Assembly: GCF_046119375.1 (NCBI RefSeq)
Contig: NW_027367086.1
Coordinates: forward strand, 1-62,168
Direction of reading: 5' to 3'
DNA length: 62,168 bases
Source of the DNA: Phyllobates terribilis
Lineage: Eukaryota
In this document: positions 7,961-44,043 of the stretch, in pieces
Position numbering within the stretch: the first letter of the stretch is position 1
Layout: every line of letters starts with the position of its first letter
The notes under the pieces: generated by a model
Seen by the model: the letters and a program-made list of their open reading frames with translations, nothing else
Database searches by the model: none
Told to the model about the DNA's origin: nothing
Made by a program: the position numbers and the translations under genes

Positions 7961-9727
7961 GAGAGATAGATTAAGACTCGCTTGGAAGCTTTAGAGACTC
8001 GCTTGGACATATCTGAGTCTCCCTTGAAAGGATATATGTAGCTTTACCACAGATGAGAAGTCGCCCTCCAGATTTTCCTAGCTGTAAATCGCCCTAAACC
8101 CCCAAATTTCTCCTCCTTCCTGTGGAACCGATAACAAACTTGGTAATTCACGTAAATTTTTGAAAGTTTCGAGGGGTAAAATGGTAAAGCACACCATTTA
8201 ATGTCTAACCTGACGGATTGTGGACATGGGTGGTGATTTGTAATAAAAACGTAACGTTTGGATGGTTTTTTGAAAAGTCAACTATAAGGAGTGATTTACT
8301 GCAAAAACTGCTATATAACGGGTGGTTTACTGAAAAACCTCTTTATTTTATGAAATTAAAAAATTGGACATAAGTTGAAAAAACTGAGTTAACGTAATCA
8401 GTTAATTTCTTCATGTTAGTAAAGGATGTTACCGATTTTCCACTTTTATTGATATTGAAAAAATTAGGACAATACAAACAAGTGAGTGCATTATTTACAG
8501 AGTCATATAACCTGGTTGTTTTGACGTTATTCACCATAATAATAAGGAAAGTTTTAGAGCAGATCCATCCAAAGAAGTGGAGAGAAAATAAAGAGAAAAG
8601 GTCTTTTTCTCTTGCATAAGTCCTTTTTTCAATCGAAAAATTAGAGTAAAGAAACTGTATAGGGTTGGAGCAAAATAAAAGATAAAACTCTGATTAATGT
8701 CCATTTACAATACTAGAGGGCCATAGACTGTTGTTTACCCTCTATATGGATGTAAAATCCCTACGAAAAGTTGTTTAAAAGTCAGTTTAAGATTTGTTCG
8801 AATAAAATATGATTGCATTAAACTAAAAATTATGTATAAGTATAGCATTCCATCTAATCAGAAATATAAAGAGTTTTAGCCTTCAATTTAATTAATAATA
8901 AAAGGTGTTTTACACTTATTTTTCTTCTTTTTATAAAAAATTCATTGAAAATAATAATTAAAAAAAAGTAATTTAGTAATGAATAAAATAAATCAACCTA
9001 TCAATACAAACACATAAAATATAATAATGTATAATATTTATTTTTTAAAAAAATAAATAGACCTGCTCCTTATTTTTTGTGAAAATTTCTAAAGTTCCTT
9101 ATAATTTCGATCGGATAGAGTATTATGCTCCCATTTTTTTGTACGGCAATTCTTTTTGACGCATTTTTTGTTCTTTCTAACGCAGCGCAGGAACGGCCGG
9201 TTAGTACGAGGTAGGAACCGGCGGTTCCTCGTATTTATAAACCGCCGGTTTGTAGCGAGCACCAACCGCCAATACTTATCTGGAGCAAACCGCGGGTTAT
9301 TCGACGCCAGTAACCGCCGGTTAGTCACTGTTATAAACTCTTGGTTTAGTGTAAATGCCAATTGGCATACAATAAATCACTGTTGATTAGTTTTTTACAA
9401 AATATAACACATATGTAGTCCCTTTAATTATATTCTGACAAAAAATGATATGTTTTACAAGCTTGTATATTAAGATAAGTAATTATTTCATTTGGACAAA
9501 ATATAGTATGTTTTACAAGCCTATAAACATTTTTCAATTCATTAAGGTGGATGTTGTTGTATGAGGTTTGTGAAATGAATATATCATAGTTAAAATAAAG
9601 AAACAATACATATAACTAAAACGAGCAAATACAACACTTATTGTCAACAACAGCCAAAACCTACACCAAATCCAAAACATAAACCAAAATTCAAAACATA
9701 AACATATACAAAAGAACTTCATGCTCA

Positions 9728-12373
9728 TCAATGGTTTGACCGGTTATAGAAAGGGCGAAACTCATCAACTGACTTCCTTACTGCCTCATATACCTCATCT
9801 ACCCGCTCATATGGTGGTTGATCATCGTAAAATGGTAGAAGGTACTCGTGTACTCGGCTGGCACTCTGCTTGACAAGTATAAAATATAGGATGTAGTAGA
9901 GTAAATAAAAATTAAAAATCGTAATTTGAGAGTGAAAATTCATATTATTACCTGGTATGATCTCACATCGGGAGAAGTAATGTAAGGGTGCGTCTTTTTT
10001 GTAAGAACCAAGACATGTAAGGCTCCTCGGACTGCCATGGCACATTAGCGGCAGCACCTAATTCCTCGATGGATAAGGTATGCCATCCTTGAGAACTCCA
10101 TATCCAATACCCTTGGTCATAGTCCATCTTGTATGCCAATGTCTTGGGTAGTCTATGAGCTCTAATAGGATCAATCACCGGCTTTGGGATCCATTGCGTA
10201 CGCCCAAATTGACGCGCCACCCGGTCTGGCATATACGGCTCTGTGTGGTGCAACAATGTCAGGACCCCATGGAATAGAGAGGGACGTAATGCCGTGTTAT
10301 TGAAGTCAAGATGACCGTGTGACATCCAATCAACCTACGCATAACATACAAATTGAATTAATTTAGCATTAAGTGTGATTAATAAGGTAATAATTGTAGG
10401 GTAAGAATGTACTTACATCACGAGCGGTCATCCTGTCGAGGATTGCTCGATACCCCCCTACTACTGACGGTCTCTCAGGATAGTACCATTTAGATGCCCA
10501 TGGCTTTGGAGCATCCTGGCTCCATCCGGGTGATTGAAGAGGCATGAATTGTGGAAAGTACTGATATATCCAAGCCTGTTATTATGGTCAAAAATAATTG
10601 AAAATTCATACATGGTCATAAGCATTTGTGAAATGCACACAATGTTTTGAAATAGAGTTTACCTGTAGAAGAGTATAGCACATCGATACTTGTCGACACC
10701 CGGTCCGTGTACAATCGCCCAAGGACCGGTACAAGTGGCATAGGATGCTTGTCCCCCGAGCTAATTTGTCAACCTTTTCGAGAGAGTTGATGTACTCGAA
10801 ATACTTGAGATCGATCTTCTTTGATGACTTGTCAGGAAATATCGCCGTCGACATCAAGAAAATCAAATACGCCGTTGCCCTATCGGTTGAAGTCCACTTA
10901 TGCACCTTCGACACGTCCTTCATCATGTCGACAAAATTATCGGACCGAATCATCCCCGACGGTGCAAGCTCTGGATCTATATTAAAGTACTCTAAAGCCT
11001 GTAGTACCAGGTAATCGTGCCTAGCCTTGTAGGTCCCTGAAAGCTTGAGTTCTGAGTTGAATGCCATGCTATCACCAAATATGGGCACATCCAGATTGAG
11101 ATGAACGTCATGGAGAGTGACCGCCATCTCTCCAAATGGCAAGTGGAACGAGCTCGTCTCCGCCTCTAACGTTCGATGAACGCCTCTATCAACTTTATGT
11201 TGATATCTGTATACATCAAATCCGGTATGTGTCCAAAACAAGACCCGTAGACAAATAACCCCCCCCCCTCCCCCCACGATTTCTTCTTCGACAATTTCTA
11301 TTTCAGGAGCATGTGATTTCGACGTTCAAAAGTCATAGTCTGTCTCTCCTACAATTTAAAATTACACATAATTATAGAAAAATTAACTTATATAAATTCA
11401 ATGACAATAGAAGAATTTAGAAAATTACCTTGTTACGATATATGTCGTAAGCTACATGATTCTCAAACCCTATTAGCAATTCCGGGTTCATGGGTCCTCC
11501 GTCCACCCCTTGTAATAACTTAGGGATATATTTCATTTGATCTTCTTGGTCGCGTCCGAGACGAAGAAGCTTCCCTAGTATCCTCCTCTGCTCTCTCCTC
11601 AACCGGTGGTTCCTCCCTTTCATCCGGCCTCTCCGCCTCCCTTTCTTCTTCTTCACTTCCATGTACCCTCTCCTCCTCCCTCTCAGCATGATCTTCTGGA
11701 TCAACCTGTCCTCATTCAGAAATAGTAAAATGCACAAGTGAGTAATTTTGAATACATTTACGTCATGATATAAAAGTTATCATTTGTCTTACCTCTGTAA
11801 TACGAATACTGGAGATGTGCTTGTTACGTTGAGTAAGTCAAAAGGCACTGAATAATGATCGCTAGACTGTGAGACAAAATGTAGATTGGGAGATGAATAC
11901 ATGGGATTTGGAGGGTAAGGGATTTGATGCTGGAAAATGGGAGAAGGATTAAGATGATTGACTCGGATAGTACTGTGGAGGGGGCGGGTAGTACTGTGGA
12001 GGAGGCGGGTACTACTGTGGAAGGGGGGGGGGGGGTAAAAGTGGCCTGGAGGAGACTGGTAATGATGTCCAGGCGGTGGAGTCGGGTAATACTGACCCGG
12101 AGGAGACTGGTAATGTTGTGTAAGCGGTGGGGGAGTCGGGAAGTACTGGCCAGGAGGAGACTGGTAGTACTGTGGAGGTGTAGCACCTACAATATCCATA
12201 GCCTCCTCGTCCGATGAATCGGGCATAGAGGTGTTACCCTTCCTCTTTCTCGGATCGTGGATAGGTATTCCTGCGGCCTGTTTTTTCTTCTTGTGGTCTC
12301 GCAAGACAACACGCACCTCACGTGATTCTCGATCAACTATAGGGGTCTTGCCGATTGATGAAGGTTCCGTCAT
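9728..12373 (-). pseudogene. Plant Mobile Domain (MAIN/MAIL-like, aminotransferase-like PMD) gene of MULE-1, multi-exon, frameshifted
   Basis: PMD motifs VERWEAETSSFHLPFGEM.VTLHDV, FPDKS, LYRSLG..TRTG..QVS.C.TLLQ, E.YMPDRV.RQFG..Q.IP and GGP..PELL.GF..HVA across ORFs 11789-12373, 11417-11737, 10606-11277 and 9963-10325. Frame changes occur near G/C homopolymers. Confidence 0.85.
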
Positions 12374-12399
12374 CTAACACAACATATATACAAATTAGG

Positions 12400-12930
12400 G
12401 TCATTCTCAACATGTATATAAACAACATATCAACAACATATTACATACATTAATTTCAAAACAAAATTTCTATAAACAACATATCAACAACATATTAACA
12501 ACATATCTATACAAACATCATATCAACAACATATTAATAACATATCTATACAAATTTAATATATATCTAAAAATTATTTTATGAAAAAGCAAAAAATTAT
12601 ATAAAAATACAACAACATGTATATAAAGAACTACATATTAACAACATATTGCAAACATATTAACAACATGTATATAAACAACAACATATCAACAACATAT
12701 TAACAACATATCTATACAAACATCATATCAACAACATATCTATACAAATTTAATATATATCTAAAAATTAATTATGAAAAAGCAAAAAATTATATAAAAA
12801 TACAACAACATGTATATAAAGAACTACGTATTAACAACATATTGCAAACATATTAACAACATACAACAACATGTATATAAACAACAACATATTAACAACG
12901 TATCAACATATAAACAACATTTACAACAAA
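12400..12930. repeat. AACAACATAT-rich low-complexity tract with a ~200-bp tandem duplication
   Basis: The block ...ATATCTATACAAATTTAATATATATCTAAAAATTA..ATGAAAAAGCAAAAAATTATATAAAAATACAACAACATGTATATAAAGAACTAC occurs at ~12545-12640 and ~12738-12830. Confidence 0.8.
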
Positions 12931-13714
12931 ATAAGAACAGATCTACTCCGCCGGTTAATAACAGATCTGAACCGCCGGTTATTCGACGCTACAAACCGCC
13001 GAAAAACGCAAAACAGCAAAGGCCGGTCACCAGTACAAGCTACCGCCGGTACCGGACATCCAGTAACCGACGGTTACCAGTAACAACTAACCGGTGGTTT
13101 CCCTTTATGGCCTAGATTCAACATTTCATTGGCCTAGATTCAACAATTTGGTGATGAAAAACAGATTTACAAATTTGTGTTGAAAAATAGTAGATCTACA
13201 TATATATAGCACAATTACATGGAAAAAAACTCAAAAAGGGAGAAATAAACTAAAATCATACCTTAATGAAGTTGTTTTTGTCTAGAATTGAGAAAAATGA
13301 GAGGATTTAGCTTCTCCTTGGTATGGAAGGGGTAAACTGCCGGTTTGAGAGCTTGTGGGAAGTGAAAATGTGGCTAGGGTTGAGGAGGAAGAAAAGAAGT
13401 GTTACTTAAGCCCAGAAAATTGTTGGAACCGTCGGTTTGTAGGCGGTAGTAACCGCCGGTTTATATGGGGTAGGAACCGCCGGTTTATATGGGGTAGGAA
13501 CCGCCGGTTTCTTCCCTTAAGTAGGTAAGCCCAAACCGACTAATGAGAGCGCAAGGATTCCACCACCACAACTTAGGCCAATGCATGTGAAGAAGATTCA
13601 CCAACTATTCACCTACCACACTTACCACAAGTAGTATAAATAGACTTGTTGTTACATCATTTCAAATCACTTCCAACTTTCCTTCACATTCTACTCTTAC
13701 TTACATCTCAAAAA

Positions 13715-16700
13715 ATGGATAACAATAACAACAATCCTTTTTTGGTGGAGCAATGAGGTAATTAATCATGTAATATTTTATTTCATATTATAGTTGTTAC
13801 ATATTTCTTGTTTACATGTTTCTATAGTTAGTTACTAGAAAATATAGTTATTAGAAAATATAGTTATTAGAAAATATATTTTGTAAATATAGTTATTAGA
13901 AAATTCTATACAAATTACTTAGTCCACACATGTCATTTTATATTATAGTTGTTACATATTTCTTGTTTACATGTTTTCATAGTTAGTTAATATAGTTCTA
14001 ATAGATGATTCTTAAGAAAATTTTGTAAATATTGTTATTAGAAAATTCTATACAAATTAATAGATGACTTTTATATTATAGTTGTTACATATTCATGTTT
14101 ACATGTTTCCATAGTTAGTTAATATAGTACTAGAAGATGATTATTAAGAATATTTTATAAATAAAGTTATTAGTAAATTCTATACAAATTATCAGATGAC
14201 TTAGTCCATATTTCATTTTATATTGTAGTTACTGCATACTTCATGTTTACATGTTTCCATAGTTCTTGGAAAATTCTATACAAATTATTAGATGACTTAG
14301 TTTACATATGTTATTTTAACATATAGGTGATTCCTTGCTAAATTCTATACTAATATTAGTGAAGTCTTATAATTTCGCAGTTTAATAATTCTTCGTACCT
14401 TGGTGACTTTGGTTACTCATACAATATTGAAGAACCACCAAGACATTCATCCTATGTAGCGGAATACGGGTATAGTTACAACGATCAAGAACCTCAAAGA
14501 CATTCATCCTATGGAGGGGAATACGGGTATAGTTACAACGTTCAAGAACCTCAAAGACATTCATCATATGTAGGTAATCCTGGGCAACCCGATGAACCAT
14601 TTGTCGGGTCTTTTAGTGAGTACATGCAAAATACGATAGGAGATGATGTTGGTGGTTCCCAACCCAATGACGACATTCAATTTGGATTTCCTCCTCTAAG
14701 CACCCACCCAACCTTCCCTGGTACTGCTCCCGAGGTTCAGTCAAGAGACTACACGGAAGATTTTTGCAACGACTTAGTTTGGAAAACTAAGAAAGAGGCA
14801 ATTGAATGGGCGAAAGATATAGCAATCAAACTGAACTTTGTTCTCAAAGTTGGAGGTACACAATCGTCTTCATTTTTTAAAATGGGTTATGTTGCGCTTC
14901 GTTGCATTAGGGAAAGGAAGGACCCTCCAAAAAAGACCCCAAAAAAGACGTCGAAGACTGGCCGTTGTGATTGCCAATTTGGTCTTGATTTGCACGAGGC
15001 ACCAAGAGGAGAATGGAGGATGAAAGTAAAAGAAGGCAAACACAACCATTCTATTGGAGAGCATCTCATCGGGGTTCCTTTAGCAGGGAGACTAAAAGAA
15101 GAGCAATTGGTCAAGGTGAGAGACATGCTTGACAGTCATTGCAGGCCCCATAGTATTATGACTGAATTGAACAAGAATCCAAACAACTATACTACAAAGA
15201 AGCAGTTGTACAACACAATCTACAAAATCCGTAATCAGAAAAAAGAGAAAAGGACCGTTGTCCAAGAGTTTTTTTACAGATGCAAATAGAATCGGTATTT
15301 TTTAGAGTATAGGATAAATCCAAGCACCAACGAGCTTCAAGATGTGTTCTTTGCGCATCTAGAATGCATGGACCATCTAAGGGCATTCTCATACATCGTC
15401 GTGCTTGATTGTACATATAGTTTTATCCGGTAAGCGTAAGACTTATTTCATGTATTTACTTTTATTATACATCATGTACTTATATAATGCATTATATTTT
15501 AGGTCAAACAATCCGTTTTTGGAGATAATCGGCGTCACCAACTCTGGTAAAAACTTCAGCATTGCTGGTTGTTTCCTAAGCGGTGAGACAAACGACCCAT
15601 ATATATGGGCCATACAATAATTGAAGGAACTTTATCGTCTAGTAGATAGGGCGCCAGTTTGTTTGGTGACGGATAGAGAACAGGCGTTGATAAACGCAAT
15701 GGATAGCTTGTTCCCCGACACAAAGTTCATATTGTGCAGGCGTCACATAAAGAAGAATATAGAAGCACATGCACTCAAGACATTCAAAGACAAAGAAATA
15801 GCAAGTGCGTTTAGTTCTGCATATTATGGGCTATTCAAGAAAAAACTGAGGCTTCATATTATGCAGAACTAAACAAAATTGTTAATACTTGGTCGAGGTG
15901 TCCTCATTTGCACAAGTATATGGAAGATTACTGGCTTGCACCACACAAAGAAAGAATTGTCTATGCATGGACTGACACGGTCTTCAACCTTAAAACCCAT
16001 ACGACTAACAGGTGATTATATGCCACTATTTCAGTTATTTCATCTTGTTTAATACAGATTACATATTTCAGTTATTTATTACAAATTACAGAGTCGAAGG
16101 TGCTCATGTGGCGCTTAAGAACTACCTTACAAGTTCTAAAGGCAACATATCCACAGTGTGGAATGAAGTCCATGATATGTTGTGTAACCTTGTGAAAGAG
16201 ATAGAAGGTACATTCAACATCAGCATGCAAAGATGATTAGGGGGAAGGGTGATAAAGGAATATTCAGAAGCATCTGTTTTGTGGTCTCTGGGAGTGCATT
16301 TTGAGCCTATCAAATGAGTATGATAAGGGAGTAGACCCCAAATACGACAGGAAATGCAGATGTATGATTAGTAGCAGGGATGGCCTACCTTGTGTGCACG
16401 AGATGGCTCCATATGTAAGGAATGAAATACCATTACCTGTTTCAAGTGTGCACCCATTCTGGAGGACTCTTAGCCTGCAACAAGATCCTTTAGATATTGA
16501 TGTACTACAAGTCGGACGAGATGTGTACAAGAGCAAGATGGATGAGTTCGTGCACAATGATTTCAACAACCTATCCCTCGAAGAACAGGCCAAGTGTCTA
16601 TATGAGATGAATAGGATTGCACACCCTGAACAAACTGATGTGCATGACTTTGCAAATGTCAAACACAAAGGTAGACCTTCGGGTGCAAAAAATAAAGCAA

Positions 16701-17554
16701 AACCACCTCCACCACCGCTCGGCTTGACCAAGAGAGTGCCATCTCACTGGGAGCATGTTGAAGAAGAAGTTGAGGATATGGGCACACCTCCCAAGAAGCA
16801 AAGGAACACACGTAAGAAGACGGGGCCGGAGGAAGTTCCTTCACATTTCCCTAACCACCTAAGAGTTCCCAAATTATAAACTTCCAAGACGTATTTCAGG
16901 TACTTGCCGAAGTTTTTGATACAACATATAGTGGGGTGGTATGAAATTGTACCTGATAGAAATTGTGGCTATCGAGCTATAGCATTTGGTATGGGTGACT
17001 CAGAAGAGAGTTGGGTGAACATAAGAGAGCTCATGATGTTTACAACCAAGGCAGACTGGGATGTCTTAGGAAAGATGATGACATCACCTGTTACTATGTA
17101 TGATATACTATTGAAGCTTCATTTCTTAGATCGGGATTGCTTTGCCCCTAAACCCACTTGGTTCACAGTTCCAGATATGGGTATAATTACAGCAACTGCT
17201 CTTAACATGAGATTAGTAATCTTTAGTAAGGGTGGCAGGGCAGCTCTACATACCCACCAATTAGGTCAAGGCCAAATTATGTGCAAGGACAAATGCTCCA
17301 AATCGTATGCCTTGGGCACGTGAAGGAAGAAAATCATTGGATTGCGATAATATTAACATTCTAAATTGGTACATTTTTTCATTCACGATTAAATATCCTA
17401 ATTGACTATATTTCAGGTTCTTCTTGACGACGAGTGCCCATTGCCCCCAATTACTTGCATGTGGGGATATCATCGTGAAGAATCGGCTTTACAGTTGATC
17501 GCTCCATATATGTCTCGTCTTCAATCTTACATTGATAAACTTCATGCACATTAA
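13715..17554 (+). pseudogene. MULE transposase (FAR1 DNA-binding, DDE, SWIM) with C-terminal OTU-like cysteine protease domain; premature stops
   Basis: TATAAATA at ~13635. Micro-exon ATG at 13715 (1-nt shift in a T-run), intron to 14380. Motifs: W.TKKEAIEWA..CDCQFGL..KHNH, VLDCTY, VTDREQALINAM..FP..ILCRRHI, SWIM CRC..SRDGLPCVH, VPDRNCGYRAIA, ENHW, last exon VLLDDECPLPP. In-frame stops at ~15287, 15618, 15870 and 16234. Confidence 0.88.
13780..14340. repeat. Imperfect ~120-bp tandem repeats in transposase intron 1
   Basis: TATAGTTGTTACATATTTCTTGTTTACATGTTT..ATAGTTAGTTA..AGAAAATTCTATACAAATTA recurs at ~13788, 13943, 14075 and 14222. Confidence 0.75.
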
Positions 17555-19924
17555 ATTCAATGCAATTTTTTTGTAAACTTATTAGTAATAAATTACTTTG
17601 TTGCAAAAAAAAGTGTTATATAAAATCAAAATATACCGAAACACGGTGATTGACCTTAACATTCATCTCAATTTACTATATAGTTAATAAAAAATTACTA
17701 ATTAACTAATTGAAAAATGTTAGTGTTATAGGTAAATTACATTGCTCTCTATATGGTTAAAGGAGAGATGAAACCATATCGATATCATCTCGATAATGCT
17801 ATAGGCTAGTAAACATTTCATCTTTTGTTAAAATATAGTATAAAAGACTATATATGTCTTATATATTGTAATAAACTTATTGAAAATTGATTAAGTGAAG
17901 CCAATTGGAATATAATAGAAACCGGCGGTTGGTACAGCACCGAAACCGGCGGTATGTGTCGCCCAGGAACCGGCGGTTAGTGGAGGGTTGGAACCGGCGG
18001 TTTCTTACCTGCGTTAAAAAACAAAAAAATATTGCGTCATTTAGCAACACCCTTTTTGTATATTCCAAGACATATGTTACGAAACCAAAAATAAAAAGTT
18101 AATCATTATATCACTTATTTTTTTATTATTATTATGGGTCGTTTATTTCACTTTTAAATAAAAAATTAGAATATTATTTTCTAGATATTCTAGTTTATGT
18201 AATATATTTTATATTATTTTTGAGAAAATTATATCTTGATTCTAAATGTGAAACAAAATTTTTAAAAAAATGTATAATTAAAATTTAAAATTATTTTTTA
18301 AATTTAATCATAAGATATCCTATATAAAAACAGGAAATAATTAAAATAAATAATACAAAAAATTCCAGGAAAAAAGTTATCATTTAAACAATCACAATTT
18401 ATTTTTTATGAAAAAATATTTAATTATATTTTGACGATATTTTTATTACTATTAGTTATTTAAATATTTAATAACTATAATATATTTATAACTTATATTT
18501 TACTTATTTATTTAAATGTAAAAAATAGGTTAAACTAATCATGGGATTTAACTTGGATGCAAACGATCTATCTGGCCACTCTATACACACCAATATTACC
18601 AGCTTTTTCAATTTTGGCGTTATCTCCCCATTCCTCCTACACAAACACTATTCTTTCTTTTTTATTATTTTCCAACTTTCACCCATTATTCCTTTCCCCT
18701 TTTCTCCCTTTCTTTTGCCCTTCATTTTCTTTTTCTCCTTTGTCACCACACTATAAAGCCCACCCATTTCAATACAAGCATTCAATTCAACAACTCATAA
18801 CAGATTTTCTTCTTCTTCCTCCTCTTATTTTCTGTTGAATATTTGAGCTATCAGTCTTTCTGGGCTTCTGGGTATAAGTTTTTGGACTCTAGAAGTGGAT
18901 GATTGATGATGAATTTGGCATGAAGTTTTTGGATTCAGCTTTATCTTCTCCTTAATTGGTTTCTGCAGCAGCGATTATTACTTCTAAAGTGAAACAACCT
19001 CTCTGTTTTCTCCCTGTTGATTTCCTCCTGTTCCATGTTTGATCATTTCGACTGTCACTGCTGTTATTCAGGTAACTAAGGGAGATCTTACACAACACAA
19101 CAGATGCCGTGAATGAAAGGTAGATTGATTTCTGTCTGAATCTATTTGTTTGAAGTTGAAAATTCCTTAGTAGTCAAGTATTCATATCAAAAGGAGAATC
19201 CACTGTCTATCTTCTTTTGGGCGTTGCATATTAATGTCAAAACCACATTTTTGCACATATATGATTTCTTTGATGGTATTATTTGCCCTACTGTCACTGA
19301 TCTAGTGATGTGGAAGGAAATGATGGATCAATAAAATCCCATTTTCTTTAGCCTTTATCCAGTGAGTAGATGCTATTTCACAATTTGCCATTGTTACATA
19401 CTAAGGGAAAAAGGAAACAATATGCCTTTGTTGCTTCTTTACTATTTAATATTTATGTACTGAAATACCACAAGTCTTGGTTGTCCTTTAGTCTGTTAAT
19501 CTCGGCTAATTAACAGCTAACCCAACAGCTAATCTTATCCTATCTTCCTCTTTTAGTACTTCTGGCACTGTCAATTAGTATTTAAATAAGCTAATAGGAT
19601 TGTTTTTCTAGTCTAGCTTCTGCACATCTCAGAGCATCTTTTCTTTGTGTTTGACCTGTTAGGTTCAAAAGGCCAAGTACACTTAACCACCCTTAACTTA
19701 TTTTATTGACTTAAGCAGCCTTTACAAAGAAAATACCAATTATTTTAGTACTATAATAATTAAGCAAGAAGTTCTTCATTTGATTGCACAAAGATTTGTA
19801 AATTCAAGGAAACCAGCACGTTTGTTTTGACTGTTTGTTACTGCTGAATAGGTGCCTTAACATATCTCGAATTATAGAACTGCAAATTTTATGCTCTTAA
19901 GTACTAATAAAATTGCAATTCAGA

Positions 19925-28244: not shown

Positions 28245-31200
28245 TCAAAACTGGGAGTTGCTCAAAAAACCCACAACGCATCTAGCCATCTGGAATGACT
28301 TATCAACTCTTTGCCATACCCGTGACTGAGCTTCTAGAAGCTTCTTCGCTTTCTCCTGAAGTTGAGGCCTCCGCCTAACCGTTTCTCCATGGATCTACAA
28401 TCAAGCAAGCAAGCGTGATTGGAGATTATGTCAAGAAAAAAGAAGAAAAACTAGCAGAAGTTTGATGTTTTTACCCTGAGGAAGAGACGGATAACAGCCT
28501 GGACAAACTCAAAATTGTTCCTGCAAGAAACTTCATGAGTCATGTAGTCTAGAAGAAGCTCAATAACTGCAAGTTCATCTCCTTCCCCACTAGGTTCATC
28601 ATCATCTTCATCATCAATTTCAACGATTTGTAATAGCCTAAGCTCCATGTCAAGAGACGAGGGAGATAGCCCCTTGATGTAATCTGTGAATATTGAAACT
28701 GCAGCAACACACAAATTCAAATCCAGTTTAGACAAAAAGGAATAAACAAGATCATTCAGAGAACACACTTTAACTTACAGTTATTTAGTTCTGCAGAAGA
28801 CTTGAGTATGCGCTCAAACTCCGAGGCTAAGCTAGATTTATCCAGAATTTTAGTGGTATCCAATACACTTTCACCCGATTTATCCTCTGTTTCATCCTTC
28901 GACTTGAATACAATGTCTCCTGAGAGGGATGGTATAGAAGGCAAAAAGAAGGGTGCTTTTTCGGGCTTCTTTGGTGGTTCAACTGGCTTATTTCGTTCCT
29001 GGTATACAAAATTCACCACTTAGAATTTACCTAATGAGTAGTTAGTTATTGTTTCTATCTTAAAAGTTAAAAGTCAGTATCATGAGTGATATCTTTGATA
29101 TACCAATTTCCATGAAGATATCAAAACAAAACTCCAAAACACCAACAGTATCAATCTGATGTTGCTGATATCCATGTAGTTTCATACCATATACCCCATA
29201 TCAGTTTGATATCAATATCTGGATATAACAAACACAGAAATATGGGTATGAATGATATCTTACACTCATATCTGATATCTTGATATAGATACCAAACACC
29301 CCCTTAGTTTCCTGAATTTATGTGAAGTGAGTGAGTTTCTGCTATTGAAGTGGTGGTTTACCGGTAACAGGCTACTACTAGTCAGTATTTTAATTCAGTA
29401 CTTAAGGTTCTGTATTGAAACTCTGGCTGAATTGAATACAGAGAAATTGGAAATTCTCCTTCTGACAGTTAATGGTTTCCTTAGGGTACCCTGAGTGGTT
29501 CGTTAAGGTTAGAATCTGACCTTAAGTGGGTTGTAACAGTGTAGCTTAAGCCTACTATACTAGAAAGAGGTATGGGTAGCAGTAAGGTAAGGTAAGAAGA
29601 GAGAGGAAAAAGAAACCTTAATGATATCCAAATTGATCAAGCTTTGCCATTGCGTCTTTGGAAGGAGGGCAAGAGAAACGAGATCTGGCATCTCCCTCTC
29701 AAACTTCTGCTCAACGCTGTCTTGAATTTCAACAGACTTATCTGTGATTTGGCCTGCCTCATTCACTTCAGACCCTTCAATTGATGAAACACCGGGCATT
29801 TTTACATGTACGATTTTGTTTCCACTAGCATAAGAGTGCACAGTTGATGAAGCAGAAAACATGGTCTGATTAACCCTGATATGTATATATAATATTCATA
29901 TGTGAGAAGAGAAGATTCAAGTAACAGCCAGATAGAGTAGTAAAGGGAAACATGTTATACCACAAATAAACCCCGTTTTGGCCAACATGTGAGGTTGCTA
30001 AGACATCCATATTGGGAGACATAGACAAAGCAGCAATTGGCACATCAGCATAAGTTGCGTCAATTTGTCTAGCCAAAATGACATCCCAAACCCTCAAACT
30101 ACCATCCATGCTGCTCGATAGAAGCCATTTTCCATCCTCTGAGAAACACATATCAGTAATACGGTCTGTGTGCCCTTCAAACTTTCTCACCATTCTAAGT
30201 TGCATCACATCATATAATCTTATAACTAAGTCATCAGTTACAGTGGCCAGTAAACCTGCCAATATACATACAACAAACAGTAAATGATTTAGCACACTCA
30301 CAGTAACAATACAAACTAAAAAAATTACCATTGGGGCGATGATAAGCAAGTTTAGAGGCAGGAGAGCCTATTTCCAACTTTGATTTTAATTGGCGTCCTT
30401 TAAAATCCCACACCTAAATAGGAAGCATATTTTGTTAGCTATGCATGAAAAGTGGAATAATAAGAGTAATAATGGGTTTTTTTGTATTAGGATAGGGACC
30501 TTTATATCACCATGATAACCGACACTAATTAATAGTGAGTTAGTTGAATCACAAGCTACTCCAACTACTCCAGCATCGTGTGCACAATGTCTTCCATCTA
30601 AGTAACTGCCACGGCTCAACCCAGATTGAAGATTAAACCTTTCAATCCAACCAGAAGCTGTTCCCAATATAGCAAAATTTCCACAAGCACTGATAGCACA
30701 AGACTGTACAGACACAAAAAGTATCAGCTATGAAATACAAACAGTTATTTGTTCAAAGGAACGAAAAATTATGTGCAAAGATACAACGAGAATGTTCGCG
30801 AGGGAACATAGTCTTCTAGATAAATCGATCTATATAGGACTAAAGCAACATGAAAAACAGCCCATGTGTTGGTTTCTCATTGATTTGGACAATTATCATC
30901 TTCTCATTAATTCTGAACAGTTTTTTTCACGTGTCAAATTTTAAGAGCATTGTTATTTTTGGACTATAGCCACATGGCATCTAATTTAGCATACATGTGG
31001 CAGAGATTATTCTGAACTAAAAATAAATTCTTCTATGTTATACAAGGAAAAATCTAGCATAATTAAAAATACAATATTATGTTTTATATTTAATTATAAA
31101 GAATTTTAGGAAATGACTAAAATGAAGAACACACGGAATCGCAATTACAAGGGAGGTTAAACTAGTGAAATCTAACCTTGACAGGAGCTTGAATTTCTGC

Positions 31201-35331: not shown

Positions 35332-35700
35332 ATTCCGGGTTTTCGTACATGTGAATTTTGAAATAAAAATAATAATTATCACTTAAATAGATTATTTTGG
35401 AAAAGAAGTTATAATTTAGTCCATTGTTAAGTGTCGCACATGTTTTTTACTAACGATCGCATACGCGTTCGTCACCATCGCAACGCTTTGAAGACGCTCC
35501 ACGAGCACGCTGACGTTGTTCGTCACGAGGAGCGTGTAAAGGCTTATAAAAGCCTAAATTTTGGCCCAAACCCTCATTATATCAACTCCTCCACCTCCCA
35601 CAAACTCTCTCTGCAGAAAAGCTTCGTTCGAACATCATTGTTGCTTGTTTGAGTTTCGTTTGGTTGTTCTTCCATTCTAAAGATCCAAATCGAAGTTGAT

Positions 35701-38700
35701 ATGGTTAGTTGTCCAATTTCTAGCTTGTTTAAGTTGATGTTTATGTAGATCTATAAGTTCGTTTGCCTAATTCTTGGATGATTTAATAATTATAGATGCT
35801 ATTTAGTTAAATTAATGTGATATATATGTATAATATTGTTGAAATCTTGAAGTATATGGAATATTTGAGTTGATTTGGAAGATATTTGGATCTATAGGTT
35901 TCTAGGTTGAATTATTGGAAGATTGAGTAGTTAATCAGGTTAATTAGTTCAAAAAATGTGAATTAATTTAAATTTATGGTTGATATATTGATATATATCG
36001 AGATTTTAATTGTAGTATTGATTTGGTGGATATTTGGTTGTATACGTAATTTTTTATAAATTGTTCTAATTTTTGGTGGATTTTTTAGGTATTTAGGTAA
36101 AATAATTAGATTTAATTACATTATATGGTTAAAATGTTGAAATTTATGTTGAATGTAGTTGTAGTATTGATTTTGTAGATATTTGATTATATAAGTATTT
36201 TCTATGAATTGTTCTGATTTATTGTAAAATTTGTAGGTAAAAAAAATTGACTTAAATACATTATATGTTAGGAATATTGATTTTTATGGTGATTTGGCTA
36301 TATAAGGGGTTTAATACCATTTAGGGTCAAAATTATCTTGGTAATGAGTTTGTTAGGTGGATTTGGTGTTTAGGTAGTTTTTAATGTTGAATTAGTAGGA
36401 AAACAATTTTGAATGTTGGTTGAGGTTGGATTTGCAGTTTGGGAAGGCAGTCTTGTATGTGTTTGCCATTGTTACAATGGCTCTCTGGGTCGTGACGAGC
36501 ATTACTGAGGTGCTCGTCACGAGCATGGCTTTCATAGCCGTCACGAGCATGGCTTTCATAGCCATCACGAGCACTTGCTTGATTGCAACTTTTAGGTTGA
36601 ATGTGATCAAATTCTGTAGTTAGTTGATTTAAATGTATGGTTAATTCATTTAAAAGTCATTTACATTGTAATGTTGTGTATGCAGGACCGACTGAAGAAG
36701 ATAGCAAAGAAGGTTGGTTGCATGGGATCCAGATCTGCACGGCACCACAAAAGGGATGCCGTGAGGGATGCCGAGCCTGGCTGCGGAGGAAGCAGACAGA
36801 GCTGAAGCAGAGCTGGGCACTAGAGTGGCCCGGAAGAAGAAGCAGGGGGCTGAAAGGATCTCCTTCTCGGCCACTTACACGCCTGCGAGATATTCAGTCT
36901 CGGGTGAGGGGAAACATGTGAATCCGAAGAGCCCTCGTACCCTTACCCCATGTACCCGGCGGCATCCGGGTCACGACATTCCATCTCGGGTGGGGGGGGG
37001 GGACGATTACATGGGAGATGCATCGTCTACCCATCAGATGTTGCTGGGGTACTAAGGTGACCAACAAATGGGTGGTGGGTCCGATTACCACCAAGGCGGC
37101 GGGTCCGGACACCACGAAGGCGGTGGATCGGAATTCCATTACGGCGGTGGTTCCGCAAACCAGTACGGTGGTGGGTCAGACTACCAATATGGCGGTGGAT
37201 CGCAACCGTACTACGGTGGTGACCATGATCGCCATCAAGGCGATTGGTCTGCCTTCGGTTATGATCGTAGTATGGACGAAGAGGCAGTTGAGGAAGATCC
37301 TCATGGTGAGGAATGGGCTCATGCTGAGGAAGAGTCTGAAGTGGAGGTATGTATAATAAAGTACAATATTGTTTATGATAAGTTAAGCTTAATAAATCAG
37401 ATCATGATTGTTTCAATATTAAATATGTCTTGTAGGGCGAGTGGGGGGGGGGGCGAAGACCGTGGAATGCCCCACGGGATGCAGAGAGTGACGAGGGGGC
37501 TGCAATTGAGGGGGTTGTAGATGAGGGGGTGGTCGTAGAGGAGGATGCCGATCCGCCACAAAGGAGAGCCAACAGGGCCATCACCGTTGATCCCTACCTG
37601 ACCGTAGGGATCAGTGGTGGTCCGGAAAACCCTAAGTTGCTTCGTGGGTTCTCTGCCCACGTTGCATACGCCATATGTCGGGGAAAGGTAAGTTACATGT
37701 TCAATGAAATGTCATTAAGTTCCGGTATGATGTTCTCACATAAATTCTAAATTAATTTTGTAGAGTCGAACATGCAGTTTCCAGTTCTGCCACAAGGTGG
37801 TGCGAGGTTGGATCCCAGCCCCGCGGACGCCAATGAAGTTAGTTGATATTGATGATGGGCTTGACCACATCCCGGACTTCATTTACAAGCACGTGGACAT
37901 GGACTTGTTCATGGCGTTCGTGGAGAGGTGGCAGTCTGAGACGAGCTCATTTCACCTACCTTTTGGTGAAATTACAATCACCCTGCATGATGTTTACCAG
38001 CAGATGAAGCTACCGATACATGGCAGGGGAATGGGTTCCTCCGAGCATAAACGCCTTAGAGGGAAGCATATCGAACTTACCCAGAAGCTGGCCGAGGCGA
38101 GGGCATTTTTGGGTTTGCGTGGGAAAGACTCTGATGTCTCCCATGCCACGCCAAGGGATAGATGCAGTAGCCATCAATACGTTACTGCCACTCCTCACGT
38201 AGCCGCCTCGGGGTATCTACTCCATCCTTTGGGTAGTGCCCTTTTCCCGGATAGGTCACAGGACAAGATTCCACTATCCAACATAGACTTTGTTCGGGAC
38301 CTGGATGAGGTCAGAGAGTGGGCATTGGGTGTCGGTCTACTTGCCTCTATGTACCAGGAACTGGGAAAGGGTTCTAGGGCTGAGTGTAAGCAGGTTCCAG
38401 TGTGATATACGCTCGTGATGGTAAATAATTGTATGTCAATTAAAGATTGTTTATATATCTTTAACGTTGCTATGGTGATGATTTAAACGTAAAATGCAGA
38501 GCTGGATATATGCCGACTTCCCGACATTTAGGCCGCATCACAGTCAGTGGGACGGTGACCGACCTCTAGCCATGATGTGGTCCCCGCATGCCCAGTCCGG
38601 CCATAGGAGAAACTACCGGGCCGAGCTAGATGCCATGTAAGCAGACGAGGTACGTATTGTGTACTACGAAAAGTTGGTTTATGCCAACGTCTATTTGTAG

Positions 38701-39325
38701 TGTAGGCTTATTCTAAAACTTAATTAATTTCTTATTCAGGTTGACTGCTGCCCTACGATGTTCTGGACTTCGACGAAGAGGACATCGCGCCATCTCTATT
38801 TCATGGTGTGCTGGGATTCGGTCACGATATCATTGAACCGTACATGCCCAATCGAGTCTTGAGGCAGGTCGGGGTAGTCCAGTGTATTCCGGCACCATTA
38901 ATCGCACCCACAAGAGCCATCCGGGCGCGATCGATAAATAGTTACAAGGTGGATTACACGACTACGCATTGGGTGTGGGATGCACAACATTTCCACAAGA
39001 TATCACTTGACGCGATCGGTGCACTGACTATGTATGGGTACGAGGTAACCGACGACTATATGGAGTGGTATTTGGCACGCACACACTCTAAAATAATTCC
39101 TCCTACGGCTGAGGAACTCAGAATGGTAAGTCAATTCTTTGTTTTCTTACAATTTCTAACGAGTAATATGCATCGATGACATGTAATGTGTTTCGGTATT
39201 CTTTTAGTGCATGAAACGTGTAAAGGACTACCTTATACAAGGAGGAAGAAGAGCACCAGCCATGGGACATGTGGGATGTCATCCAAAACAGTCTCCAAGA
39301 CCTGTCTATTTATGACTTACCGTGA
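35701..39325 (+). pseudogene. PMD (MAIN/MAIL-like) gene of MULE-2 with Gly/Tyr-rich N-terminal region; stops and frameshifts
   Basis: Possible ATG-only exon at 35701 spliced to 36686 (MDRLKKIAKKVG). Motifs GGPENPKLLRGFSAHVA, AFVERWQSETSSFHLPFGEITITLHDV, LFPDRS, LLASMYQELGKGSR and EPYMPNRVLRQVG. Premature stops at ~38403 and ~38638. Confidence 0.85.
36485..36575. repeat. Tandem 24-bp units with CGTCACGAGCA core in PMD intron
   Basis: CTCGTCACGAGCATGGCTTTCATAGCCGTCACGAGCATGGCTTTCATAGCCATCACGAGCA, preceded by an inverted copy GTCGTGACGAG. Confidence 0.8.
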
Positions 39326-39531
39326 TTGTTAGGTTGTTGTAGTAGTTGAATGTTGTAACTTCTAATCTTTTGTTATGGAATTGTCATGTTATTTATTTTT
39401 CAAACTAATTGAATCAATTCGTTATGAACTCATGCAACATAGCACAAACAGCAAACAACATTACCACTGACATAGAAAGGGTTCAACGTTACGTAGAACC
39501 AACACAAACAACATAACGTTAAAAACGGTAC

Positions 39532-39995
39532 NNNNNNNNNNNNNNNNNNNNNNNNNNNNNNNNNNNNNNNNNNNNNNNNNNNNNNNNNNNNNNNNNNNNN
39601 NNNNNNNNNNNNNNNNNNNNNNNNNNNNNNNNNNNNNNNNNNNNNNNNNNNNNNNNNNNNNNNNNNNNNNNNNNNNNNNNNNNNNNNNNNNNNNNNNNNN
39701 NNNNNNNNNNNNNNNNNNNNNNNNNNNNNNNNNNNNNNNNNNNNNNNNNNNNNNNNNNNNNNNNNNNNNNNNNNNNNNNNNNNNNCAGCACAACNNNNNN
39801 NNNNNNNNNNNNNNNNNNNNNNNNNNNNNNNNNNNNNNNNNNNNNNNNNNNNNNNNNNNNNNNNNNNNNNNNNNNNNNNNNNNNNNNNNNNNNNNNNNNN
39901 NNNNNNNNNNNNNNNNNNNNNNNNNNNNNNNNNNNNNNNNNNNNNNNNNNNNNNNNNNNNNNNNNNNNNNNNNNNNNNNNNNNNNNNNNNNNNNN
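39532..39995. other. Assembly gap (N run, with a 9-nt island at 39786-39794)
   Basis: N bases in the sequence. Confidence 1.
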
Positions 39996-40105
39996 CGTTA
40001 CATGAAAGAAACACGATACACAACATAAAACAACAACATAAGGTTACACACGTTACATGAAAGAAACACGATACACAACATAAAACAACAACATAAGGTT
40101 ACACA
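39996..40105. repeat. 55-bp tandem repeat (2 perfect copies visible, array probably extends into the gap)
   Basis: CGTTACATGAAAGAAACACGATACACAACATAAAACAACAACATAAGGTTACACA at 39996 and 40051. Confidence 0.9.
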
Positions 40106-40124
40106 CGGTGGAGAAATGTGACGA

Positions 40125-40684
40125 TCACCCGATGAAGTTCGCAGGGATGCGAGCTAGGAGCTCAACTGTGGTGGGATGCATTGGACGATCCCTGAATTTC
40201 TCAAATTCTGGGGGACAACTTGTTGTCCACCATTCGTCGTCAACAATAGGATCGTGTCTGTCGGGATAATCCCTTACGAACCTTGTCCAGTCAGCATACA
40301 TGTTCTTCAACATGTCAAACCTCAAGCTTAACACTCCTGGAGTTTCACCCATTCTAGTTGCCTCGTTAAATTGTTCCGTTCGAACGAATGTAGTACAGTG
40401 TGTAAACAAGAAGAGCATCATGATGATGATGATTGAAGCATATGTTGTTATTTGTTCCTGGAATACAATAATGTATGTTACCGAAGTAGTTTATAAAGAT
40501 GCTTATTAATGAGCACAAATTTGAAGTTTACCTTAGTTTGCGGAACCCCATAGACTTGCTCCGCTATGGTTGACATCATCCATGTTGGTATTGGACGCAT
40601 GTTGTTACCATTGTTGTCAGAGGTGAAGTAACGGTGGTAAACCATACCATCACGGTACCTGAAAGACACCCTATCAAAATTCAT
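40125..40684 (-). CDS. Two-exon orphan gene (161 aa) inside MULE-2, unknown function
   Basis: Exon 1 40684-40532 (MNFDRVSFRY..GVPQTK), GT-AG intron 40531-40458 (74 nt), exon 2 40457-40125 in frame (EQITTYASIIIIMMLFLF..IPANFIG*). TATAAATA at 40755-40748. Confidence 0.65.
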
Positions 40685-41149
40685 CACTAAACAGAATGGC
40701 AATGGAAAGTGTTGTTTTGGGATGAGATTTCTCTTGGCCGTCTGCAGTATTTATAGCTAAATTAGGATGGATAGATGGGTTACAGTGGGAGTACAGCTCA
40801 CATCCAGATTCTATATTATTTTTCAAGATTCAAGGAGACATATGTTTGGGTCTTAAGCTGCAAAGCATGATGGAACCCTGCAGTGCAAGGTCACATCAAT
40901 ATAGGTGAATTGCATTTCGGAATCCAATAGTAGATTGGTGACACTCTTCAAAGTAGGCTTACTTGGTAGCCCATTTGTCATATTGGGCTTCAATTTGTTG
41001 AGTTAAGATGGGTTTCCTTCTGTTAAATGTGAGTTCTGTTGGGCTTCATTTTGTGTAAGTGTGAGTTATAATGGGCCTTGTTTTTGTTAAGTGTGAGTTA
41101 TAATGTGATTCATTCATTAACAACACCGTGTAATTAAGACAATGTGGGA

Positions 41150-42572
41150 AATCATAACAACAAACATGAAAAAACATTAAGGAACTTAATATTACATGGA
41201 CAAACAACACCATCGTCACCGACATCTACTTGAGTACTACGTTGTTTCCAATCCCTTCCAGCCTGTGTATGTCTATCTGCCGCATCAACTTGATAAGATC
41301 CTAACCGTGGAAGCACGGGCACAAGCATTTCATTGACTGAAGGTTCATGATGATAGTTCCACATCACATTCAGTGGAGGGAGGGGCGAGTTCGGATGAAT
41401 GATAACTTGCGTGAAAGAAATAGATTTCGAGAAATATTTACAAGTAAAATATAACGAAGTTCTAAAAACTGCATTTACTAGGAATGTAATAAACTTACCG
41501 AGACCTAGTGGGACTCAAGTGGTATGTGGCCTAGACATATAATCGGGATATGTTGATCGGGAACATGGTCTGCCGCTACACGTATAGGCAAGTGAGTGCT
41601 GCTATTGTTTTCCCTGAGAATTACCAACACTACATTTAAGGTTATGCAACAATCGTCCCCATGTCAGGAATAGTAAACCACTTCCACGACGGAGCAGACG
41701 GCCAAGACCATTGCGAGTTCAGCTTGTCAATCATCTATTCCTTAGTGATTTATGAAAATATCAACTTGCTTTTGACCTCTCAATCGGTTTCAACCGTCCT
41801 CACTCCTCACCATGGCATCCCTTGTTTGGCCCCAATCATCTTGGTCCGTACCAAGACCAAGAGCTATGGATATGTATCCACAGTTTCCGTCGGAGATGAT
41901 CTTGTACCAACCTTGGATGTACAATCCCATAAATTGTGGCCACACCTTGTGATACTTTCTGTTGACAAGCAGTCTTGGCGCTTTTGAAGGTTGTTTGGGT
42001 TCCTTTTCAGACCTCCTCGTGGTGTTCTTCTGATTCTTCGGTGGTGTCTGGTCCTTGTCAACTTCTGAACTCTCCCACGCACATGGTAGCCTTTTGTTGA
42101 GTGCACCAACCGGTCTGGCCTTGTGCTTGAAGTTTGCGGGCTCGTCAAGCTTTGTCTCTTCAAGGCGTATTATCTTGTTCAACATCCTGACCGCCTTCAG
42201 CTGATCATCCATGATCAACTTGTCGAAATCCTCTCCTGTAAAGCCGTCCATCAATGATCTGTTCACCTTCCTCTTAATCCTCTTGTCGTCAACAACATCG
42301 GGTACATCCAATATGGAAAGGGTTCTCCAGAATATACGGATCGTGGTAATGGTCTACCTTGTGTGCACATAAGTTCCAATTACGTGGTAGCAGGGGAGAC
42401 CGTCCTTGGTCATCTTGGTGCATTTGCAGCACGGTTCCGGGTTCAAGAATTGACCGTTCTTGTACTCGACCATTAGACGGTTGAAAGTCGGTGCTGAAAC
42501 CCTGTAGTGTAGCAGGTTGAAAATGTGGGCTCCATCTATTAGCTTGAATTGTGTTTCTAAACTCATATTCAA
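41150..42572 (-). pseudogene. C-terminal remnant of MULE transposase (SWIM + OTU-like)
   Basis: CCKCTKMTKDGLPCYH (SWIM), FKHKARPVGA, WYKIISDGNCGYISIA (OTU-like), last exon VIIHPNSPLPPLNVMWNYHHE..LPRLGSY, matching MULE-1 VLLDDECPLPPITCMWGYHRE..MSRLQSY. Confidence 0.82.
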
Positions 42573-44043
42573 AAAAACAAGAACAAATTGTACGTACTGT
42601 TTTTAAGTTCATATGGACTATATTGTTATTCTTTGTTTGAAGAAGTTGGAGCTGATATTTTTATGGCGGATAGGCAAGTTAGGGATATATGAGATACGAA
42701 GCTAACTATATATACAGGAACAAGATTTTAAATTGTACGTATTGTTTTAAAAAATGAATAAACCGAGTACCAGACTTATATATGAGTATTAAAGCATTAG
42801 GATGAGCGATAATGTTTACTTTCTTCTTCTATAGTTCTGCACACAGCCAGTTGTCTTTCTCGTTCGTCTTTCCACGCCTCATTTCTCTTCCTCGATCGTC
42901 CTTCCACGCCGCATTTCTCTTCCCCGGTCATCTTATCTCCCTGAATTAATAAGCTTTCAAGTTTAATAATTCATTTTTAAGCTTTTCAAAATCATACATT
43001 TGATCTCCCTTAAACTTTAAATTTCTACTTTCTACTCACACAAGTCAACTATATGGCTTTTTCTACTGAAAAACTTTCTACGGAACTGCAGGAAAAACTT
43101 TCTACTGAAACTTTATAATATTATAAAAAATTGTTCTTTAGAATTCTCTCTGCTTTATAATATTGTAATATTAACTGCAACTTCCATCTATTTCAATTTG
43201 TAGCCCTCGACACGGATTCTACAACACAAGTCAGTCACTGATTCCATCGACCTGTCAGGTTCCGATTCAAACAACTTGGGTGATATTGAGGATCTCAGAC
43301 AAGAAACAACGGCTGCCGCCGTGCTGAATTTGTTGTTGTATTTTCTGAAAATTGGTTAACCAGAATGACTTTATGAACCAAAATAAGACAAATATGTAAA
43401 AAGATAGGAACCGATGAACCGACTTTAGATACCGTTCAGATTGCAGGTTAGGGTAATGTCGATTCCTTAGTAAAATTCATGGGAACCGAACCCAATTAAA
43501 AATTCCTTTTTACTCCACGAGTAGGCTAAAAAAATAATAGGAATCGTAAGTTCCCAACCCTACTTTTTGCAAGATATTGAGCTAATTTGTTCAATCTGAA
43601 AGTATTCTATTAAGCTTCATTTCATATCTTAAGCTTAATTGAGTATGTCTTGAAAAATTATGTGCTTACATTTTTAAGTGTTTGTCACCATCAAAAAGAG
43701 AGAAAGAGTTAGTTTAAGCTTGAGTAGCTTAAACGTTTCACTTGTTTTGATGATGATAAACATAGAATTTGATGTTCATTGTGTGTGATAAGCTTTCCAG
43801 GAATAGCTCGAGGAGTTAGGGGAGTAGATTTGACACAAGTGGAGACTAGCTTCTCGCCAAGGCAGTGTTGAAGAATAAAGAACAAAGGAAAATAAAAGCC
43901 CAAGTGGTGAGTTGTGAAGACCGGAGGACTAGCTGAGTGAAGAGAGTCGTTGCGAGCTAGTGGATCAAGCTTCAAACTCATAGTGAAATATACAAGTGGA
44001 TCAAGTGCCGAAGAGTGTCCTACGGTGGAATCCTACACCAGCG

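Follow-up and report, generated by a model that had tools for sequence, protein, structure and literature searches.

Why should a transposon carry one short palindrome both at its ends and between its genes, and which protein, if any, would read it? The question is raised by an 8.9-kb element (element 1, 9144–18051) in contig NW_027367086.1 of the Phyllobates terribilis assembly GCF_046119375.1, of which the stretch from 1 to 62,168 (the window) was analysed. Element 1 is a plant Mutator-like transposon (Mutator-like element; MULE), as identified by its target duplication, terminal inverted repeats and MULE and FAR1 domains. The 9-bp duplicates flanking it, TTTTTTGTA and CTTTTTGTA, agree at eight of nine positions, a length typical for Mutator-like elements (9–11 bp), and the terminal inverted repeats consist of an imperfect core of ∼48 nucleotides (nt) at both tips. 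A gene for a plant mobile domain (PMD) protein on the minus strand and a FAR1/MULE transposase gene on the plus strand point outward from its centre, a divergent arrangement that the initial annotation had proposed and that is borne out by Pfam matches to PF10536 on the minus strand and to FAR1 and MULE on the plus strand. This copy is dead, with a stop codon in the transposase and single-letter length differences in the PMD gene. The palindrome arrays that it carries most likely represent a family-specific landing pad, at ends and promoters, for a DNA-binding protein encoded by the element itself.

A scan of the window with the palindrome AACCGSCGGTT gave ten exact matches and 18 with at most one mismatch; dinucleotide shuffles averaged 0.01 and 0.25, respectively, and no shuffle equalled the observed counts. 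All of these matches fall between 9192 and 18002, inside element 1, and all except a solitary one at 11601 (17 of the 18) belong to four clusters, which hold ∼22 sites once degenerate sites consistent with the phase are counted (two-mismatch scan with a phase check). The ∼20 copies in four clusters reported by the initial annotation are thus confirmed, as is their regular spacing, with the estimate of roughly 22–25 bp giving way to a period of exactly 24 nt; the direct repeat placed at ∼13451–13510 is likewise real, its unit being 24 nt and not 23 bp, and extends as a tandem repeat of 3.6 copies over 13425–13510, the later part of internal array 2. The lattice and its phase are seen directly in the DNA. 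Flanking letters widen the palindrome to ∼19 nt, with TA preferred two letters beyond each arm, giving the extended unit TA-NN-AACCG-S-CGGTT-NN-TA. The arrays contain 5–11 CpG per 100 nt, compared with 2.75 for the whole element, and form CpG islands within an AT-rich transposon. The first left site starts 48 nt inside the left tip and the last right site ends 49 nt from the right tip; the right-array sites are all G-centred, that is, in the opposite orientation to the left array, and both internal arrays share the polarity of the left end.

Other copies of the family bear on the two internal arrays. Public contigs from runs under three organism labels, together with raw reads, were compared with positions 9100–15099 of the window. 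The family is very abundant in these runs, and other copies cover every bin of the segment, and so also the two internal arrays with the unique spacer that separates them; copies with the internal arrays were seen in runs under at least two organism labels. Array bins are 10–50 times shallower than coding bins, certain records can be placed on two arrays, and the differences given here are among the best supported. The letters carried by the majority of the family give a perfect motif at 9294 and at 13070 (in the latter case by an A-to-C difference seen in 11 and 8 contigs) and bring 9272 one letter nearer to the motif. Other copies have the same motif with differing 13-nt spacers and differing numbers of units; in X1 and X3, 13392 is joined to 13473, with 39 nt in place of 13393–13472, so that array 2 has fewer units.

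Some shared stretches might suggest that the internal clusters are left over from transposon ends, either because a PMD-only and a transposase-only element came to abut or because an end fragment was nested in the centre: AACCGCSGGTTATTCGACGC is common to 9288 in the left array and 12970 in internal array 1, and the last unit followed by TTCTT-CCT is common to 13496 and 17989. We consider this origin highly improbable and reject both of its versions. The word TAACGCAG from the terminal core occurs exactly only at the two tips in the window (9178 on the plus strand and 18009 on the minus strand), and because the interior has no terminal core the internal arrays are not the ends of another copy. 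No target duplication lies in the interior, the two arrays there carry left-end polarity, other copies hold the same arrays beside the same unique spacer, and a promoter-proximal array stands at the same place in sister families. The initial annotation had named, as one of two observations that would speak against its idea, an end fragment nested in the centre and missing from the other copies of the family; this was looked for and the opposite was found, leaving that idea standing. The internal clusters, lacking a terminal core, present in other copies and homologous to an array of the sister families, belong to the element and are unexplained by transposase end-binding alone, as had been suggested.

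Protein searches retrieved no full-length sister copy of the element 1 family. A word search with the transposase DNA-binding exon gave no match and an exhaustive one reached 44% identity at best, mostly in 1-kb contigs; the PMD exon gave a single 31% match, exact look-ups of ten open reading frames found none of the ten in the collection, and the C-terminus of the transposase from scaffold L004 (described below) matched short contigs only. Longer protein matches (P0006 and others) were dropped as distant FAR1/AFT proteins with unrelated fusions. Among the relatives from the DNA-binding-exon search (≤44% identity) two had usable DNA, L004 and L003, and the sister DNA-binding exons are 35–38% identical to that of element 1.

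L004, a 6.2-kb scaffold, has a PMD exon near-identical to that of a second element in the window (element 2), and the two are therefore taken as one family. It has a terminal core homologous to that of element 1, six TTCGTSACGAA sites in 24-nt phase and then, beyond a spacer of ∼570 nt, three further phased sites placed ∼150–210 nt before a TATA box and the ATG of the transposase; this order of array, TATA (near 1003) and ATG (at 1074) parallels that of element 1. The first intron of the L004 transposase is packed with short repeats. The left terminal core of element 1 also aligns with the tips of both L004 and element 2. In L003, five ACACGTWACGTGT sites at exact 24-nt intervals lie upstream of a TATA box and ATG, and the sister arrays as a group lie ∼100–210 nt upstream of the transposase TATA box (L004 and L003). 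A PMD gene is present in every sister family whose downstream DNA was visible. Element 2 itself is a second, convergent PMD-MULE at 35430–44000, ∼40% identical to element 1 in both PMD and transposase; the 5' half of its transposase and its far end are either absent or interrupted by a retrotransposon, of which a copia-type gag lies at 45339–47183.

On the sequences compared, the clade is characterized by the 24-nt phase, by a palindrome that contains CpG and is degenerate at its centre, and by an array immediately before the transposase promoter. The palindrome is family-specific and the terminal core is conserved; the swap of the palindrome, like the presence of the lattice in other copies, is a direct observation. 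The L004/element 2 family shares with element 1 the terminal core, the 24-nt phase, a 5-1-5 palindrome with a central S, the pair of PMD and transposase-OTU genes and the array upstream of the transposase TATA box, but its half-site is TTCGT where that of element 1 is AACCG. Central-base polarity (C-form or G-form), regular in element 1, is mixed in L004 and element 2, and was for that reason given no weight in the argument. The two families also differ in gene direction. The genes of the L004/element 2 family converge from the ends, so that each gene starts at an end and end use is confounded with promoter use, whereas those of element 1 diverge from the centre, leaving its end and promoter arrays physically unlinked. 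The end arrays of element 1 face the 3' ends of its genes, apart from the promoter arrays, so that a single motif would serve ends and promoters alike.

Features of element 1 and element 2 in the window (nt positions)
Feature	Position	Strand	Basis or remark
Left target-site duplication, TTTTTTGTA	9135–9143	.	Read directly
Left terminal inverted-repeat core, ∼48 nt, with GACGCA...TAACGCAG	9144–9191	+	Aligned to reverse complement of right tip
Left subterminal array, six 24-nt phased positions: 9192, 9216, 9240, (9264), 9288, 9312	9192–9322	.	
PMD gene, several exons, decayed	9731–12373	-	PF10536
Probable PMD 5' intron, with AT-rich TATGTTG repeats and array 1	12374–13261	-	Predicted from splice-like letters
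Internal array 1, seven phased positions: 12946, 12970, (12994, 13018), 13041, 13065, 13089; two degenerate	12946–13099	.	
Internal array 2, lone site 13335, then four phased: 13427, 13451, 13475, 13499	13335–13509	.	Between the two gene starts
TATA box, TATAAATA	13635–13642	+	Read directly; array 2 lies ∼125 nt upstream
Transposase gene, short exon 1, then repeat-rich intron	13715–17551	+	FAR1 and MULE domain matches
Transposase DNA-binding exon	14363–15286	+	
Transposase MULE domain	15405–15872	+	
SWIM-like and OTU-like C-terminal part of transposase	16256–17320	+	
Right subterminal array, four phased sites: 17920, 17944, 17968, 17992	17920–18002	.	
Right terminal inverted-repeat core	18003–18051	-	Alignment with left tip
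Right target-site duplication, CTTTTTGTA	18052–18060	.	Read directly
Element 2, PMD-side end: homologous terminal core, CGTSACG-type sites 35468 and 35519, TATA box	35430–36575	+	
Element 2 phased sites, four at 24 nt, in probable PMD first intron	36489–36575	+	
Masked N runs	39532–39785 and 39795–39995		

Within element 1, whose exons were searched singly, Pfam matches PF10536 on three minus-strand exons of the PMD gene, at 10606–11277 (E = 1.6e-23), 9963–10325 (E = 2.2e-8) and 10372–10578 (E = 0.017); relative to the majority of family copies, this gene has single-letter gains or losses at 11165, 11812 and 11949. Splice-like signals (acceptor ttag/ATG at 12374/12373 and donor AAG/GTATGA at 13262/13261) delimit the probable 5' intron, such that array 1 probably lies within it and array 2 between the two gene starts. 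Taken with the TATA box at 13635 and the central position, these splice-site-like sequences suggest a bidirectional promoter at the centre of the element, with a candidate transposase ATG at 13715. In the transposase, PF10551 (MULE) matches adjacent exons (E = 1.1e-8 and 1.3e-3) and PF03101 (FAR1) matches with E = 1.2e-3, a score that falls short of the Pfam cut-off, with its Cys/His pattern kept in the relatives. The interrupting TAG stop is at 15287–15289, where relatives have Glu.

Both proteins have further features of note. The C-terminus of the transposase includes an OTU-protease-like segment (16880–17320, plus strand, with DRNCGYRA; DGNCGYRS in L004, 3248–4444) and matched nairovirus vOTU structures weakly (E = 0.013) in a sequence search of the PDB; Pfam calls neither OTU nor SWIM in this copy. 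The same kind of PDB search with the PMD gave no match. Tandem peptide repeats occur near both N-termini, a 57-nt unit repeated 2.5 times and encoding YGYSYN-QEPQRHSSY in the transposase (14430–14573) and units of 21, 51 and 54 nt encoding Pro/Tyr-rich repeats in the PMD protein (11964–12166), and recall the variable tandem-repeat regions reported for VANC proteins. The first transposase intron (13775–14272) is built from 132–155-nt tandem repeats with embedded 16-nt TAGTTATTAGAAAATA units, and other copies omit 340–400 nt of it, a copy-number variation.

We propose that a protein of the element family binds the AACCGSCGGTT palindromes spaced every 24 nt; what we infer from here on is that a protein binds and which one it is, where transcription begins, and how the element would be regulated. 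At the subterminal sites the bound protein may help to assemble or license the transposition complex; distances of 48 and 49 nt between the tips and the nearest sites, and a right array inverted with respect to the left, are what such a complex would lead one to expect. At the central 5' control region of the divergent genes, the same protein might auto-activate the element promoters or shield them from silencing. Because this copy is broken, such a circuit would act in trans from intact copies.

The likeliest reader is the transposase, through its N-terminal zinc finger of the FAR1/WRKY-GCM1 type, a possibility that we put at a little short of an even chance. The mirroring of the end arrays about the tips argues for it, and MURA of MuDR, the terminal repeats of which double as promoters, is a precedent for a transposase acting as its own regulator. 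In AtMu1c, a MULE transposase alone binds its own ends, hypomethylates them and activates cognate copies (bioRxiv 10.64898/2026.08.24.746577). AtMu1c and MURA thus resemble what we propose, in that a MULE transposase binds terminal-repeat sites and activates or demethylates cognate copies, but in both the binding sites are confined to the terminal repeats and AtMu1 is without an accessory gene, whereas element 1 also has internal arrays at its central promoter region. Several other observations weigh against the transposase. The 48-nt terminal core is conserved across families with wholly different arrays, which would fit two readers, as TnpD and TnpA are in En/Spm, with the transposase on the core and a second protein on the arrays. 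A distribution over introns and upstream regions has been reported for the sites of VANC, which is an accessory protein, and not for those of a transposase (PMC5735166). The transposase yielded a single DNA-binding domain, at the sub-threshold score given above. DNase-seq reads from one organism gave no clear open-chromatin signal at the arrays, their depth tracking copy depth, with at most a twofold relative excess at the arrays against a contig depth that is not comparable. Binding of the motif by any protein is itself a prediction.

The second protein could be the PMD protein, for which the initial annotation had suggested the internal clusters as landing sites. It is possible, if doubtful, that a PMD dimer on the palindrome, and not the transposase, reads the lattice, acting like VANC or TnpA. 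PMD would then mark family copies at ends, promoters and introns and counter silencing by DNA methylation or Polycomb, with the transposase reading only the conserved terminal core. Several lines of evidence are consistent with this. Among host proteins of the PMD-C group, MAIL1/MAIN and MAIL2 associate with particular motifs in promoters, of which one is palindromic; the motifs of VANC are peculiar to each family and form arrays, through tandem duplication, in non-coding DNA at the ends, in upstream regions and in introns, as do the motifs here; the terminal core is kept across families while arrays are swapped, again suggesting two readers; and the PMD gene accompanies all sister families with visible downstream DNA. 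On the other hand, direct DNA binding by any PMD is unproven in the literature, and the arrays are placed with exact symmetry about the tips, which suggests a role in the transposition complex. The host PMD-C modules (M1M and M2M) do pair a PMD with a short promoter-proximal motif, palindromic in M2M, in opposition to silencing, but they involve single motifs at host gene promoters and not phased arrays, and the only printed instance of the MAIN/MAIL1 'DOWN' motif, CATGCAGTTT, is unrelated to AACCGSCGGTT. A fold similarity between PMD-C and DUF1985 has been claimed in the literature; an AlphaFold2 model of the PMD exon from a four-sequence alignment had a pLDDT of 34, unusable for fold comparison.

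A different lattice might also be the target of PMD, which would count against its reading the palindrome. AT-rich TATGTTG units (ATATGTTGTT, with a period of ∼11 nt) occupy first introns: 16 lie on the PMD-sense strand of the probable PMD 5' intron (12380–12904, minus strand) and four in intron 1 of the L004 transposase (1295–1421), with five more in the spacer of element 2 (∼40030–40090). The window contains 44 TATGTTG words against ∼12 expected. Unlike the palindromes, TATGTTG is common to both families and may represent a second protein-landing array.

The sites might alternatively have no reader encoded by the element: a host factor may bind them, they may work as promoter or enhancer modules rich in CpG, or small-RNA silencing may target them, and they would have spread by tandem duplication. 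This has something in its favour, since the arrays are rich in CpG and arise by tandem duplication, and non-coding tandem repeats of VANDAL elements are also described as targets of RNA-directed DNA methylation (PMC10398659). We regard it as improbable, because it leaves unexplained why sister families in the same genome keep phase and positions yet swap the whole palindrome, and why the placement is mirrored at 48 and 49 nt from both tips. The probability left over from the transposase, PMD, host-factor and nested-end explanations we assign to mixed or cooperative binding.

Metagenomes were also scanned for two phased motifs, giving 35 loci, none of them homologous to element 1; most are either in-frame coding repeats with a 24-nt unit, from GC-rich organisms, or satellites with a 12-nt unit, and for two from gut-metagenome records (L009 and L016) motif sites were counted only. 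An AT-rich contig (GC 0.40) of the JGI metagenome Ga0126337 has 19 AACCGCCGGTT-like sites with a 25-nt period (L021, 3269–3848; L022, 557–882). It has no detectable homology to element 1 and may be another eukaryotic repeat using the same palindrome. Elsewhere in the window, a CACTA-type transposase gene (Transposase-associated domain, Transposase_21 and DUF4218/DUF4216) lies at 52425–55356 and a fragment of a WD40 host gene (WDR36/Utp21-like) at 29870–30349.

The closest known counterpart is VANDAL21 of Arabidopsis, a Mutator-superfamily element with the anti-silencing system VANC (Hosaka et al., 2017; PMC5735166). Like element 1, it has an accessory gene and a short motif packed into dense arrays in its non-coding DNA, at the ends, in upstream regions and in introns; the arrays gain and lose units by tandem duplication, and the motif differs between related families. 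The corresponding features of element 1 are a dense family-unique motif, with 18 of 18 matches inside the element, and gain or loss of tandem repeats between copies. The accessory proteins differ, DUF1985 in VANC and PMD here, and Pfam found no DUF1985 in the accessory gene of element 1. So do the motifs, which are AT-rich and oriented in VANDAL21 (YAGTATTAY) and a CpG-bearing 11-nt palindrome in strict 24-nt phase in element 1. Element 1 further differs in having clear terminal inverted repeats, and its self-recognition is a prediction from sequence. En/Spm (CACTA) with its protein TnpA offers a second likeness, since its ends are also two-tiered, with a short conserved terminal repeat and motif arrays at both ends; these arrays overlap the promoter, and TnpA acts in both transposition and epigenetic control. 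Array 2 of element 1 stands ∼125 nt upstream of the TATA box and between the two gene starts, where it may overlap a promoter. En/Spm belongs to another superfamily, however, and its TnpA motifs are neither palindromic nor phased, whereas element 1 has promoter arrays apart from its ends and genes diverging from the centre.

The mechanism proposed here belongs to a known kind, the self-recognition lattices of transposons, for which VANC, TnpA and AtMu1c are cases with an identified reader. We found no description of phased palindrome lattices in PMD-MULEs in the open-access literature; the idea that PMD counters silencing is already a published working hypothesis. The arrays would fit a self-targeted regulatory or anti-silencing circuit. 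We tentatively suggest, as an idea that may well prove wrong, that PMD-MULEs run a VANC-like self-recognition in which each family pairs its PMD with its own CpG-bearing palindrome, placed every 24 nt at ends, promoters and first introns.

Recent work shows PMD proteins acting together with short DNA motifs to oppose Polycomb silencing, and it is an actively pursued question whether PMDs encoded by transposons do likewise. The element 1 family offers a clean natural case in which to establish whether the PMD of a transposon reads DNA: end and promoter arrays are physically separate and use the same motif, and its sister families within the genome retain the geometry with another palindrome in its place. 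These sister families are ready sets of wild-type and swapped sites for distinguishing transposase from PMD and for following the co-evolution of protein and target specificity. The family being very abundant in the runs compared, its arrays may also amount to a sizeable store of regulatory sites rich in CpG. If PMD is the reader, these arrays would be the first set of natural DNA targets for a PMD encoded by a transposon, the several sister families would allow its specificity code to be mapped, and the motif modules of host MAIL/MAIN proteins would be linked to a transposon origin; each family would then shield only its own copies from silencing by DNA methylation or Polycomb.

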